Shown: positions 9,379 to 63,972 of the stretch, one piece after another | How the letters are laid out: every line of letters begins with the position of its first letter | Numbering within the stretch: the first letter of the stretch is position 1 | The notes under the pieces: generated by a model | The model's input: the letters and a program-made list of their open reading frames with translations, nothing else | Told to the model about the DNA's origin: nothing | The model's database searches: none | Program-made: the position numbers and the translations under genes | Assembly: GCA_964234715.1 (NCBI GenBank) | Contig: OZ174276.1 | Strand: one strand, 5' to 3' | DNA length: 64,000 bases | Source: Podarcis melisellensis | Taxonomy: Eukaryota

Positions 9379-9511
9379 NNNNNNNNNNNNNNNNNNNNNN
9401 NNNNNNNNNNNNNNNNNNNNNNNNNNNNNNNNNNNNNNNNNNNNNNNNNNNNNNNNNNNNNNNNNNNNNNNNNNNNNNNNNNNNNNNNNNNNNNNNNNNN
9501 NNNNNNNNNNN
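9379..9511. other. Assembly gap (133 N)
   Basis: Run of N. Confidence 1.
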
Positions 9512-57528: not shown

Positions 57529-57631
57529 ATGGACTGGGTGAAATTGCGTTCCTATTCCCGGAAGAGGCGGGCTCAACAGAATGTCCATTGTGCATCTCCT
57601 ATCCCAGCTGCGGCAGCATCTGCTGCTGTAG
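57529..57631 (+). CDS. MEIKIN: MEIKIN-like coding exon A (exon probably starts at 57495; alternative phase-1 donor at 57712)
   Basis: MDWVKLRSYSRKRRAQQNVHCASPIPAAAASAAV vs recalled human MWPLRVYTRKKREGQR; acceptor tttgtag|57495; donor GTAG|gtgaaa; syntenic position downstream of ACSL6. Confidence 0.75.
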
Positions 57632-59138
57632 GTGAAAGGAATACTAAAGCCAAAGGGAGTCGGCTGCGCCTAGATCTGCTTTCTGGACCTCGGCAGGAAC
57701 CTCATGTCAGAAGTAATCATTCATGCAACTACCTTGTCCTTCCCCATCACATTCCTGTTTGTCTGGATTAATTACAATATTTGTTGTGTCTTTGCGTAGT
57801 GGCACAAAGGCCCTAACTACTCTACTGTGTACTGTCTAAAAATGTGTAGAATGTACTCTTAATGTAGTCACTTTATGTACTCTTAATGTAGTCACTCTTA
57901 ATGGAAACACTTTATTGGTGAAATTGGTAGTGGGGAAGAGGGTGAGGTGTTTGTGAATGTGTTGGGGGCTTATCTCACCTGCTATGTCTTGATGAGTATT
58001 GTAGAAAGCTGCTTGGCCTGCTAAATGCATTACATGGGACACAGAGATGGGGCTTATTGCTTTCCTCAGTTTGGTTTGTATTCATAGTTTTTGTCACAGT
58101 TGCTCAGACCCTGACAACACTGAGCTCATTACTCCAGTATGTGCTCCTTCTGCAACACTGAATGTCAACAGTGAACTCGGTCCTGATGTCAGTCTTTACC
58201 ATCCCAGCTAAAAATCACCAGCTGCAAATACAAATCAACTGTCCCCAGGGCACACAAGGATGAATCCTACCCTTTGAGCCACCTCACAGTGGAATCCTGT
58301 CTTAGGATGCAAGCACCATTGAACCTAGTGAAACTTACTTCTCGGTAAACAGGCATAAGATTGGGTCTTGAGCCAGTTGCTGTTTTGCTTTTTCCAAGGT
58401 TCTCACTGTTTTTGAAAGCAACACTCCTATCACCTGGTGTTTTTCCAAGCTGTTGAATCCCCACCCTCTCAGGCCACTTTCTAAATACATACCGTACATA
58501 CGGACTTTATGCAAACAGAACACTGATGTTGCCATTCAAGAGTGGTGGTTCATCCAAGTCTCCTATTTTGGAAATTTTTGATGGTGTTCACAGTTATTTC
58601 CCCCACACCTGCAATGGTTAGAAACAGCCATTTTTATAAATTGTGTGTGGGTGCCACTGACAACAACACCTGTTCTCATCTGTCGCCAAAATAATTTGCC
58701 CCTCTTGAAATGCAAAGAGCAGGTGGTAAATCTGAATATAGTTATGCACACTTAAGTCAGTGGTGGACTTTGGTCTTTCAGATTTCAGTGTCGCCTTGTG
58801 GGCAGCCAAAATTCAGCACCCCCCTTCCTCTCACCACCTGTTTGGCTCAATTCAGTACATCATAGTTGTGGTTCCCCCTATTGCGGTAGAACCAGTCATG
58901 CTGCCCTAAATCCACCTCTGCTTAAATCCTGTTGTTCCCAGGGGGATTTGCAGATTATTCTCAAATATTTTTGAAGTAAAGTGTTGCTTCATTGTGACAT
59001 AGCCCTCAGTCACATGACAAAAAGATCCTTGTTAGGGGGAGGAGGATAAAGACCAAGTATGGCTGCAGTCTTACCATATGGAGTATTTACCTGTGTGAAG
59101 AATAGGTGGAAATGTAACCTGTTGATGATTATTCTACC

Positions 59139-59285
59139 CAGTGCTTTTTTCTTGGGGGACGCAGGGGGACGCATACCCCTAAACATTTTGTGAATCTAGG
59201 TTTAGCCTCATTGAGGGGCAGTATTTCAATATGAGTAGGAAAATGAGAGCACCCCTAAACTTTTTTTTAAAGAAAAAAAGCACTG
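59139..59285. mobile_element. hAT MITE with perfect 8-bp target-site duplication
   Basis: CAGTGCTTTTTT...AAAAAAAGCACTG; ATTCTACC at 59131-59138 and 59286-59293. Confidence 0.9.
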
Positions 59286-60957
59286 ATTCTACCTAAACAG
59301 CTCTTAAAACTGTGCAGCAAAAGCCTTTGATCCAGATAGGCTTGGTTTACCAAGTGCATTAAATTGGACTGTCAGTAGGGGGAGCTTTTTGCCTTCTGAT
59401 ATTGTACTAAGTCTTGGGAGCATCAAGATTTGCCTTAATTTCTTTTTTAAAGAAACTGATAGCAAAACCTGATGAAAATTAAAAGGTGCAAAGGAGTTGT
59501 TCTTGCAAATCTCTGGAGATTGAGAGCTTAACATGTGTCTTGATTTCACAGTTGTACTAGGACCTTCCTTTTGAGAGCAGAAATTCCATTATAGTGCAAC
59601 TCTGAGGTTTTCTTTTGCTCATTCTTTGTTGACTTGCTAGAGTTGTGTTGTCCGTAGCCGATACACAAACGAAACAAATGTGGAGTAATCTACTGACCTT
59701 GAAGAGAATCTGTTCAGGGTGGGTTAACATGCTTTTTAATGCACCCAACTGTATGTGCACATGTCTTTGCTTTGTTTGCATGCCAAACTATGGTGTATCA
59801 GGGCTGTGCAGACTCCTGAAGAGGATCTCCCAGCTGCTTTACTTCCCCCAAGTCATTTTACTCCTGTACTGTGATGAGTTTGGGTTGGCTTAGCTTGTTG
59901 TACAAACCTAGGTTCATGGTTAAGCTCTTTCCTTGTTTACCATGAGCTGCAACCAAGAACAAACCATTCAGTTACTGTGACATATGAACTAGTCCTGCAT
60001 ATATTCCCATACATTCCTAGGCAGCCGCACCAATTGCAGAGTGAGGAATGGCAGGCCAGCCTAGGCAAACTGTTTAATGGAGCATTCCAATAAATGATCT
60101 CGCAGTGAGGTTTAACAGAAGGGTAAGTAGGCCATTCACCCAGTGTTTAGCAATCTGCTGGGTGAAGTGTTTGCTGCCCTCCATTAAATGCAATTGCAGC
60201 AGGGAAGGGTGTTTCACCAAGCAGTTTAGCAAGTTGCACTTTGAAGGCCCTCTTCATTAAACCTCTCTTCAGCCATGTTTGGTAATCTGATGGGTAGATG
60301 GGAGCTTGCATCCAACACACCATATCCTTCAACCCTTGCCCCCGAGGTTTGAAAGCCCCATGGGTCACTTGAAGTCCCAACAATCAGGGCTTCAAAGGGA
60401 AACATTGCCTGGTGTCACTATGATGTCAGGTGGGCAGCATGGAGGTCGGGGACGGACTATGGGGTTTATGGGTGAAGTTTAAAGAATGGGGAGTTAGCCC
60501 AGGGGGTTGGTGAGCAGGGGCAGAACCCCTTGTGTGTGTAAGTGTGTGTGTATGCATCTATGGAAATGTAAGTTGAGTGGCTAATATACACTCAAAGAAA
60601 ATGTGCACATAATCCATGAAGAAGAAACTGTGTACATTCCCTGTTCAATATAAATAATCTCAAACAATCATGGAGGAATGTGCATATCTCGGTTTGAATT
60701 TTGCACATACTCGGGGCACCAGAAATAATTACATTGAAGCCCTTCACTCAGCACCTGTATACAAGTTGGGTGAATGCCAAACAACTGTGACGTCTTAACA
60801 CAAAGAGATGATTCTTACTCTCTCTTTACAACAGAGCAAACACTTTGGGTAAATGTAGGACTTTAGGTTAATATCAATTTATACAGTTTATACAATATTT
60901 GTTCTGTTGGATCATAATCCTGTGTTTGGCTAAACATTCGCTTTTTTCTCCCTGTAG

Positions 60958-61048
60958 GACAAATTGGAAATGCCTTTAAAAAAGCATTGCCCAAAATTCA
61001 AGAAGCCTCTGGGGTGACCCAGATGGACTGTCTTTCAGTGGAACAAAG
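60958..61048 (+). CDS. MEIKIN: MEIKIN-like coding exon B (phase 1 to 2)
   Basis: cttttttctccctgtag|GA...CAAAG|gtatag; (G)QIGNAFKKALPKIQEASGVTQMDCLSVEQ; LPKIQE vs recalled human LSKIAE. Confidence 0.75.
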
Positions 61049-61468
61049 GTATAGATTCCAGTTATTCTATTATTGGATCTGGGGGAAGGTCTTGAGCACT
61101 TGAGGCCCCATAGATGTTGTTGGACTACAAATCCCATCAACTCTGACAATTGGCTATGCTGATTGCTTGGAGTCCAACAACTTCTGGAAAGCACCAAGTT
61201 CCACACCACCAGTCTAGAAACTGTCAATATGATGATGCAATTCAGCTTTAATTGTATTTATAGGCGTTATGGCCAGGACAGGAAGGACTTGCCTTGTTTT
61301 GAGCAACATCCCCAGAGCAATAATAATGCCAATTTCTGTTCTCAATGTGTTGGTTTAAGTTCAAATTAAAAGAAATCATTCTTCTCAGAAATTCCAGATA
61401 TCAGAGTTGGTTTGAAATTGCCTATGAAAAATACAGACCCATATTTGTGCTGTATCCCCCCCCCATAG

Positions 61469-61547
61469 CACTGAATTAAATGAAAATGAAAACAGAAGCA
61501 TGGAGGTGAATAAAAGTATCAATAAAATGGGCACTGCTGTATTAAAG
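61469..61547 (+). CDS. MEIKIN: MEIKIN-like coding exon C (phase 2 to 0)
   Basis: ccccatag|C...AAG|gtatgt; (S)TELNENENRSMEVNKSINKMGTAVLK; ENRSME vs recalled human ENRSSE. Confidence 0.72.
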
Positions 61548-62541
61548 GTATGTATTTAATTGTTAAACCTCTTAAATCCCAACAAATCTATGTACTACTG
61601 GTAGGGTAAAAACGAAAGACTGCTGCACCTTCAGAGTCCAGCCAATCAAAATACATATACAGTATTTTGTATGCAGCCAGTGGTGTGTCATGGAGCTGGT
61701 TTGTACATCACACTAAGCCAAAATCACAATTAAGCCATGCTAGCTCCTAGGCAGCATGGTAAGTGGTCAGGGATGATGGGAGTTATAATTCAAAATATAT
61801 GGAAAGCACCAGGTTGTTTCTGTATGTATTCTGTGGTTCTGACTTTAAAGTGGGGGCAAATCCATCTCTCTGAGGTACGTGGAAATATCAGGGTTTGCAG
61901 TAATCACCAGCATAATTAGTGTACCAGCCTCTCTGATTGCTGGGAGAATTTTAGTGTGGAGGAATATTAGAAGTCATACTGTTTCAAGTGGTTGGTGTGG
62001 AACAGATGAATTGTCATAAAGACCTATGAATATTGTCCAGGTAAGTTCATGGCTATGCTCTATTCACATTGACTTGGATAGTGGCTGGAAATGTGCATCA
62101 ATCACAATGAAATTTATACAAGTTGACAATACCACTATAGAGGTTCAGTGCCCAGGAAATAACCACCATATGGGTTCAGCTTTAAATTATTCTCTCTGTC
62201 ATGTTAGTCTCCACACAGAACCTCTGATCTTAACAGAGACTGTGCTTGGAAGAAATTCTGGGGCTTTGTGGTGAATGAGAAATTCTCCCATTCTGCTTGA
62301 TGACCTTCTGCAGATGAACAATTTACATAATTTAAAATTGCTTCCATGTGGCCATTGATAATACATTTCAAATCCAAGAGTTGCTCTGATCAATGTTAAG
62401 GAATATTTTGTTAATGACAAAACTGTGCAGAACTGTTTCTTTCTGATAAATTATTTTCATGAATTTTGTATGGTCATAAGGGAAATCACAGTTTTATCTA
62501 CGTCATACCTTGTCATCTCCATCTTTCACTGTTGTTCTTAG

Positions 62542-62602
62542 GATTCTTTGCATTTAAGCTCTGCAAGTAAAGAGAGTGCGAGATATAGTGAAACTACATC
62601 AG
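62542..62602 (+). CDS. MEIKIN: MEIKIN-like coding exon D (phase 0 to 1, 61 nt)
   Basis: gttcttag|GAT...TCAG|gtgagt; DSLHLSSASKESARYSETTS(G) vs recalled human ...NSELVSG. Confidence 0.75.
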
Positions 62603-63972
62603 GTGAGTATGCTTAAGCATACTGGATCAGGAACTGTATTCTTCTAAATATTATTCCAAGTTCCCTAATGTGACTAGTCTTCATGTTAATATTTTAGTTC
62701 CCCCAACCCAATTTTAATTCCCCCAACCCAACTCTGTGGCCAGTGCTGAAGCTTTCCTCAGGAGCAATACATATCACTAGTGTTTCTTGTTCAGCCTTCT
62801 ACATAAGAAGAAGAAGGGCAGGGGGAAAATGAATTATTGGGTGAACAGGAGTGAATAACCTTTGGCCCTTCAGATGTTGCTGAATTACAACTCCCATAAT
62901 CCCTGAGCACTTGGACTGCTGGAAGTTGTAGTTCAGCAACCTCTGGAGGGCCACAGGTTCTTCACCTCTGATCTAGAAATACCAGTGGGTGTTCTAGATA
63001 GCTTTGCTGAATGCTTGGGCTTCAAGTTGGTGCTAGCAGCATTGGTTTTAGGTCATGTACTTGGTTATGTATTATAACTAGAGATTTGCAGACCTTTAAA
63101 AAAAACACAGAAAAACGTTTTTCCAGTTTTTTCCTATTTCCGAAAAATTGGAGGAAAGGTTCTCTTCCCCCCACTATTTTTTCTTGGGGGGGGGGGGAAT
63201 TCCAGGCCTTCACATCACTAATTATAACAGACTTCTAAAAATTCAAGTAGATTTTGAGCACCAGTCTGTAGACCAGGATATAACTTTTAATGCCTTGCGG
63301 ATCTGTATAGCCCAAATATGTGGATAATAACTTAATATTCATTCCCATCAACAATCCTTTTAATTGACTGCTCACAATGGCTGATGTCACCTAAGTCCTA
63401 GTCTTATTTCCACCCTAATCATATTGTGCACTTTGGGTCATTTGGTCCGCTGCCCATCTGATGAAGAAAAGGGATCGCCAGTTACTTTGTTGAAATCCTC
63501 AATATTCTTATTATATTATAAACCTGTTCTGTTCAGTTTAATTAACCATTTTAAACCATGGCACTACATAGAAGTGGTGCTGTTTATCATTTCCAGGATA
63601 CCTACAGTATTTCTTTTATATAGAATAAATATATTACTGCTTATGATGGAAGCTGAAAACATTGCATGTATACTGAAACAAGTGCAGAGGTTTGAGTATT
63701 GGACTAGGAGACTATGGTTCAAATGCGCTTTCAGCCATGAAACTCACTGGGTTACTTTGGCCCAGTTGCCATCTTTCAATCAAACCTCCCTCACAGGGTT
63801 ATTGTGAGGGTAAAAGAGGGATGGAAAGAACCATGTGGATGTATGTCACCTGGAGCTCCTTGGAGGAAATTTAGGACATGTAATATAATAATAAATGAAA
63901 ACTAATCCAATTGAACCTATTACTGTTGCTGTTCTCCATCCTTCTCTCATGTGGCCTGCCTTCTGTTCACAG

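Follow-up and report, generated by a model that had tools for sequence, protein, structure and literature searches.

The window (the whole stretch of 64,000 nucleotides analysed here) carries on its forward strand the exons of a long-chain acyl-CoA synthetase and, downstream of these, the first part of a gene that protein homology identifies as MEIKIN, from a Podarcis-type lacertid (Table 1). The exons encoding the AMP-binding signature of the synthetase lie at ~21–38 kb, with the last exon of the gene near 43.5 kb; taken singly, its exons give weak matches to the Pfam AMP-binding model, and we take the gene to be ACSL6 from the likeness of its C-terminus to that of ACSL6, together with synteny. 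MEIKIN runs on past the end of the window, and what follows it can be seen in the corresponding locus of Podarcis lilfordi, to which the window DNA is 97.7% identical: there, MEIKIN is followed by FNIP1 in the same orientation, such that MEIKIN sits between an ACSL-type gene (in the window) and FNIP1 (in the P. lilfordi locus), with the order ACSL6-MEIKIN-FNIP1 the same in mammals. In the human genome, ACSL1 is followed by CENPU in the way that ACSL6 is followed by MEIKIN, on one strand; since MEIKIN and CENPU are both kinetochore proteins that dock PLK1, and both lie downstream of ACSL genes, the two might be copies that go back to vertebrate genome duplication. A run of 133 N at 9379–9511 is either an assembly gap or a masked stretch.

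Table 1. Features of the acyl-CoA synthetase and MEIKIN genes, in window coordinates
Feature	Position	Strand	Basis
ACSL6-like long-chain acyl-CoA synthetase exons (upstream neighbour)	17700–43610	+	AMP-binding signature exons, weak Pfam AMP-binding
Coding part of MEIKIN exon 1, from Met1 into the first base of the Arg62 codon (donor A/GTAATC)	57529–57712	+	phmmer, tblastn
MEIKIN exon 2 (91 nt; phase 1 in, phase 2 out; ‘exon B’ of the preliminary description)	60958–61048	+	AG/GT borders, homology
Upstream flank QIGNAFKKA, preceded by the junction Arg and the exon-1 end ...HVR; the basic patch, in the 15 residues before the motif	60960–60986	+	
LPKIQE core, L-x-x-I-x-E (P1–P6), in MEIKIN exon 2	60987–61004	+	translation, orthologue alignment
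P7–P9, A-S-G in the window species	61005–61013	+	translation
MEIKIN exon 3 (79 nt)	61469–61547	+	identity to P. lilfordi residues 93–118, borders
MEIKIN exon 4 (61 nt)	62542–62602	+	95% identity to P. lilfordi residues 119–139, borders

Exon structure of MEIKIN

The unspliced open reading frame starting at the ATG at 57529 was compared by phmmer with 1.84 billion representative proteins, and this exon-1 frame matched proteins named meiosis-specific kinetochore protein with E-values of 2e-16 to 5e-7. Seven of the nine significant matches begin at their own N-terminus and cover query residues 1 to 45–72; six of these are proteins of 230–435 residues and one is a 69-residue fragment, and relatives of the matched proteins are named ‘meiosis-specific kinetochore protein’ (Pfam PF27928, Meikin) by their sources. 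When P. lilfordi MEIKIN (P0014) was compared with the window by tblastn, four exons were located: residues 1–61 correspond to 57529–57711 (95% identity), residues 63–91 to 60960–61046 (100%), residues 93–118 to 61470–61547 (identical) and residues 119–139 to 62542–62604 (95%). With the phmmer matches, and with exons 1–4 95–100% identical to P. lilfordi MEIKIN residues 1–139, the name given to the gene in the preliminary description stands; it is not a hidden gene, since MEIKIN is annotated already in many squamates. Exons were searched singly and never joined into one spliced query, and the support for them is homology rather than transcripts of the window species; with their split codons included, exons 1–4 have AG/GT borders throughout and consistent phases.

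Two other splicing arrangements were considered and rejected: an exon-1 donor at 57631/57632 was ruled out, as homologues extend the exon to 57712, and splicing exon 2 straight to exon 4 produces a frame clash, which the intervening exon 3 resolves. At position 57634, inside coding exon 1, related species read A and the window reads G. Approximately 5 kb of intron 1 in the P. lilfordi locus (L001 10964–15995) is absent from the window (58486–58498), reflecting either an insertion or a deletion. In every DNA run, contigs reach very high depth at 59000–59400, 61050–61200, 61600–61800 and 62800–63000, with numerous repeat-type joints, which marks these places as interspersed, SINE-like repeats; one of them starts ~60 bases past the donor of exon 2. 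The P. lilfordi protein also contains a separase site, SPEIFR, and a conserved C-terminal block; in the window gene the separase site, the PLK1-docking sites and the CENP-C-binding C-terminus all fall past the window end.

MEIKIN residues 1–17 (57529–57580) contain the block M-D-W-x-K-L-R-x-Y-S-R-K-R, conserved in squamates, turtles, crocodilians and mammals, whereas birds begin with another sequence rich in Arg/Lys; in the AlphaFold2 model, residues 3–17 are a predicted helix and the sole part with a pLDDT above 55. Just beyond this, at residues 23–26, is a nearly invariant [S/T]-P-x-P element (S-P-I-P in the window, 57595–57606), with Pro in 35 of 36 taxa at both Pro columns, which sits ~48 residues upstream of the LxxIxE motif described below and is likely to be a CDK site within reach of a phosphatase docked there. 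The coelacanth orthologue (Latimeria chalumnae, P0063), which is misnamed ‘serine/arginine repetitive matrix protein 2’ (SRRM2) by its source, has a long insertion of repeats rich in Ser, Pro and Arg, which separates the conserved middle block from the conserved C-terminal one.

An LxxIxE motif in exon 2

The preliminary description had reported the hexapeptide LPKIQE, and translation of the forward strand yields exactly this sequence at the place given, within a canonical 91-nt exon; the minus strand holds nothing relevant there. The exon is preceded by a polypyrimidine tract and AG and followed by GTATAG, and the frame that encodes LPKIQE is the sole open one of its three forward frames. The strict pattern L..I.E is itself degenerate, with 29 matches across the 127,996 six-frame positions of the window (2.3e-4 per position), and ~0.007 matches are expected by chance in a 30-residue exon and ~0.09–0.12 in a 400-residue protein. 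As ~0.1 matches are thus expected in any protein of that length, a single match is weak evidence alone; the evidence lies in its conservation.

Conservation was followed in at least 160 MEIKIN sequences from squamates, turtles, crocodilians, birds and mammals, drawn from three homology searches (the third contributing the best 120 of 523), and in one coelacanth protein from the same searches. Among the matches listed, ~153 sequences contain the motif region, and in every one of these the aligned position reads L-x-x-[I/V/L]-x-E. The motif was flagged as absent in eight sequences, seven of which are N-terminally truncated partials or a shorter isoform; the eighth, a camel isoform, does have the motif, positioned outside the distance filter.

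Residues were counted by position across 96 distinct orthologous 15-residue versions among the matches listed. In this set P1 is Leu and P6 is Glu in all 96, and P4 is Ile in 91, Val in three and Leu in two. Among the same listed versions, P2 is Pro in 83 of 96, P3 is Lys in 76 (79%), the residue two before the Leu (P-2) is Lys or Arg in 81 (84%) and P9 is Glu or Asp in 82 (85%); P5 is Lys in 53%, P7 is Lys in mammals, and P8 is Ser in 29 of 96, often those of squamates and turtles. The 15 residues upstream hold between two and seven Lys/Arg (mean four) in all of the distinct versions listed. Mammals contribute LPKIKE, LQRITE, LRKITE, LPKIAE, LPRIAE, LPEIAE, LQKISE, LPKISE, LRKIAE and LPKIVE, with two lemur orthologues reading LPKIAE and LPRIAE, and the coelacanth has LPILKE; the preliminary description gives LSKIAE for human MEIKIN. 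Retention of L, I and E is therefore broader than the preliminary description had claimed, spanning squamates, turtles, crocodilians, birds, mammals and the coelacanth, with P4 changed to Val or Leu in a few. Birds, amphibians and fish had been singled out in advance as groups in which loss would speak against the motif: it is kept in birds, and the lobe-finned fish in the sample carries the variant just given.

A balanced alignment of 36 taxa, running from the N-terminus to the separase site, places these observations in context. Only seven of its 223 columns are invariant: four belong to the separase site, SPExxR (its S, P, E and R), two are the motif L and E, and the last is a Ser elsewhere; the Ile column is kept in 34 of the 36 taxa, with conservative replacements in the others. 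The motif L and E are thus conserved on a par with the separase site, and in all taxa aligned the motif lies ~100 residues N-terminal of the point of separase cleavage. The surrounding exon had been described as otherwise unalignable, which holds roughly for mammals versus sauropsids; it does not hold within sauropsids, where exon 2 aligns along its whole length.

The motif is found in a comparably short, ag/gt-flanked exon in tortoise, kiwi, gharial and alpaca, with exon limits inferred from the extent of the protein match. Between these species and the lizard, the codons of the motif differ synonymously (Leu TTG/TTA, Ile ATT/ATC, Glu GAA/GAG), which shows that the constraint acts on the protein. 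An internal control is provided by a second match to the pattern, L-S-x-I-L-E, which lies within a much better conserved block, after NSTLLDTSKA, at residues 220–225 of P. lilfordi MEIKIN (LSQILE, beyond the window); this is complete in turtles, archosaurs and some squamates, and its Glu is lost in mammals and many squamates, so that not every LxxIxE in MEIKIN keeps L, I and E. LPKIQE is a real, deeply conserved short linear motif.

The motif and the docking rules of B56

According to published work, the motif recognised by B56 is [LMFI]xx[ILV]xE, in which Leu and Ile are preferred and Glu is obligatory, and affinity rises when P2, P7, P8 or P9 is acidic or phosphorylated (PMC10970375; docking rules are also given in PMC8809670); further affinity comes from a basic patch that lies up to ~15 residues before the motif, through an acidic patch on B56 (PMC7108865). 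The core pattern is present in the LPKIQE of the window, with the preferred Leu at P1 and Ile at P4, and in all 96 distinct versions among the matches listed, each of which also has two to seven upstream Lys/Arg in keeping with the basic-patch rule. Of the affinity-enhancing positions, P9 is acidic in most species and Gly in that of the window, and P8 is Ser in some, whereas Pro occupies P2 and Lys or Asn is frequent at P7. An engineered B56 inhibitor carries the sequence LPTIHEEEE (PMC7327492), and Pro at P2 is therefore compatible with tight binding. Features that could weaken affinity are Lys at P3, P5 and P7 (the last in mammals), a Pro at P2 that is not phosphorylatable and, in the window species, A-S-G at P7–P9; as the B56 pocket prefers acidic or phosphorylated residues, the basic inner and flanking ones may reduce affinity. 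If the motif binds B56 at all, we would expect the interaction to be moderate or weak.

AlphaFold2, run on P. lilfordi MEIKIN with 22 homologues, gave a mean pLDDT of 41 and placed no secondary structure in residues 18–210, with a small rise in confidence at residues 68–74, over the start of the motif; essentially the whole protein, the motif region included, is thus predicted to be disordered and accessible. In the searchable literature we found no data on MEIKIN–B56 binding, co-purification or localisation, and no published conservation analysis of the MEIKIN LxxIxE site.

Discussion

We propose that the conserved motif in exon 2 of MEIKIN is a candidate docking site for PP2A-B56, engaging the LxxIxE pocket of B56; on the basis of its pattern and flanks we consider this reading somewhat probable; the basic patch that precedes the motif would aid docking, as would the acidic residue that most species have at P9. 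One point against it is that P2 (Pro in 83 of the 96 distinct versions among the matches listed), P3 (Lys in 76) and P-2 (Lys/Arg in 81) are kept beyond what B56 needs, which hints at an additional or different partner. One could then read the whole island, K-x-L-P-K-I-x-E-x-x-E, as a docking motif for some protein other than B56, with the match to LxxIxE coincidental or secondary, and the net basic character of the sequence, unusual among strong B56 motifs, points the same way. Saying this, the positions that never or hardly ever change are precisely the three that determine B56 binding; mammals vary at P2 (Q/R/S), P3 (E/R) and P-2 (H/Q/P) but not at L, I and E, and no other known class of motif accounts for those three residues together. 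We regard a different partner as unlikely.

The basic residue at P-2 also raises the idea of a cyclin-docking RxL (Cy) motif, K-x-L-P, that would bring cyclin-CDK1 for the priming phosphorylation of the S/T-P sites of MEIKIN. In motifs of this type, [RK]-x-L precedes a hydrophobic residue or Pro; the window has K-A-L-P, with Lys/Arg at P-2 in 81 of 96 and Pro after the Leu in 83 of 96 versions among the matches listed. PLK1 binding by MEIKIN is known to need multi-site phosphorylation (bioRxiv 10.1101/2020.11.29.402537), which would suit such a role; however, several lineages have H, Q, E, T, A or P in place of the basic residue, and the Ile at P4 and Glu at P6, both dispensable for an RxL motif, are kept, making this reading distinctly improbable. 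More improbable still is an APC/C KEN-box degron that would set the stability of the N-terminal fragment: L-P-K-I-K-E-N, in turtles and many birds, does overlap a KEN box at P5–P7, and ELM predicts a KEN box in the N-fragment of Xenopus laevis MEIKIN (bioRxiv 10.64898/2026.09.11.750869), but KEN is found in just 33 of the 96 distinct versions among the matches listed, is absent from mammals and most squamates, and is Q-E-A in the window, whilst neither of the Xenopus MEIKIN fragments is degraded across the MI–MII transition. The alignment also led us to reject a D-box or a SUMO consensus, as the basic residue is out of register and the P5 Lys is not conserved. There is lastly the view that the match arose by chance and has no function, the region being kept for reasons that act on the nucleotides, such as splicing signals in a short exon. 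The pattern is degenerate (~0.1 strict matches expected per 400-residue protein) and the exon has a mere 91 nt; yet across six vertebrate groups and over 150 sequences L and E never change, their codons differ synonymously, and neighbouring residues of the same exon vary freely. This view is effectively refuted.

Returning to PP2A-B56 as the favoured partner, a model for what such docking might do can be drawn from what is known of the protein. Full-length MEIKIN is anchored at meiosis-I kinetochores through its C-terminus, via CENP-C, and also carries PLK1; in human MEIKIN, separase cuts at residues 151–154, after which the N-fragment (1–154), which does not bind PLK1, leaves the kinetochore, and the C-fragment keeps CENP-C and PLK1 binding at a lower potency (bioRxiv 10.1101/2020.11.29.402537). 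A phosphatase docked on this kinetochore-anchored, PLK1-carrying protein would sit beside PLK1, and we suggest that the motif serves to hold a pool of PP2A-B56 on full-length MEIKIN at meiosis-I kinetochores. There it might dephosphorylate MEIKIN itself, for instance at conserved S/T-P sites, one potential target being the Ser at P6 of the separase site, ~100 residues downstream of the motif, and might also act on nearby substrates such as REC8. The preliminary description had further proposed that the site could act with a YSR-like PDS5 motif as a cohesion-protection module in the N-terminus. In vitro, PP2A-B56 dephosphorylates engineered sites 12 or 70 residues from an LxxIxE motif at similar rates, and one at 130 residues more slowly (PMC7327492). 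Since the motif lies ~100 residues upstream of the cleavage site, it is located on the separase-released fragment, and cleavage at anaphase I would part the docking site from the kinetochore-bound C-fragment. On balance we lean modestly towards a model in which full-length MEIKIN, through this motif, keeps PP2A-B56 at meiosis-I kinetochores until separase severs the tether at anaphase I.

It is tempting to go one step further, and to view separase cleavage of MEIKIN as a phosphatase-release switch, in which an N-fragment bearing the B56 site is cut from a kinetochore-bound C-fragment that keeps PLK1, removing the MEIKIN-tethered pool of PP2A-B56 and so helping to deprotect centromeric REC8 for meiosis II; we offer this extension as a speculation that is probably wrong. 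The established centromere route for meiotic PP2A-B56 runs through SGO2 and BubR1, and published models place MEIKIN upstream, acting via PLK1 and BUB1, all of which counts against direct recruitment of PP2A-B56 by the motif. A mutant in just three residues could probe the role of the N-terminal half of MEIKIN, and the same mutant could probe how protection of centromeric cohesin is lost between meiosis I and II in vertebrates, a matter still debated. If B56 binding is true, MEIKIN would be one kinetochore scaffold holding both PLK1 and an opposing phosphatase; if it is false, the motif still marks a functionally constrained site with a partner worth finding.

The idea of an LxxIxE in Meikin is already published. 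Keating, Touati and Wassmann (Cells 2020) state that Meikin, Rec8, Emi2 and cyclin B3 each have at least one LxxIxE in disordered regions, and suggest that these be explored (PMC7072534); their passage on the Meikin LxxIxE comes without a position, conservation analysis or experiment. The present analysis adds the conservation of an individual site, the features that flank it, and its place on the separase-released fragment.

Comparison with known systems

One close likeness is to the KARD of BubR1 (L-S-P-I-I-E-D-S), the kinetochore receptor for PP2A-B56, which shares the L-x-x-I-x-E core and likewise lies in a disordered part of a kinetochore protein that interacts with PLK1. PLK1 phosphorylates P8 of the BubR1 motif and so strengthens binding (PMC10970375), and many squamate and turtle MEIKINs have Ser at this position. 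Where BubR1 has a Ser-Pro that can be phosphorylated by CDK, however, the candidate motif of MEIKIN has Pro-Lys at P2–P3; MEIKIN is also more basic, and is meiosis-specific.

A K/R-rich patch within ~15 residues N-terminal of LxxIxE, like that of MEIKIN, is found in KIF4A, RepoMan, AIM1 and NHS (PMC7108865). Those four are validated by ITC, co-immunoprecipitation and crystal structures, whereas the putative MEIKIN patch is both shorter and less uniform (2–7 K/R).

With the shugoshin (SGO1/SGO2)–PP2A-B56 complex, the established protector of centromeric REC8, the candidate site in MEIKIN would share an end, namely PP2A-B56 at meiosis-I centromeres. The means would differ, as shugoshin binds PP2A-B56 through a coiled coil and is not known to use an LxxIxE peptide, and MEIKIN is currently placed upstream of SGO2.

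Finally, the regulator Emi2, which like MEIKIN is specific to meiosis, contains a B56 motif, L-S-T-L-R-E, that has been validated, has a basic residue inside it and binds weakly, with a KD of ~41 uM (PMC7108865). P4 is the weaker Leu in Emi2 and the preferred Ile in MEIKIN.
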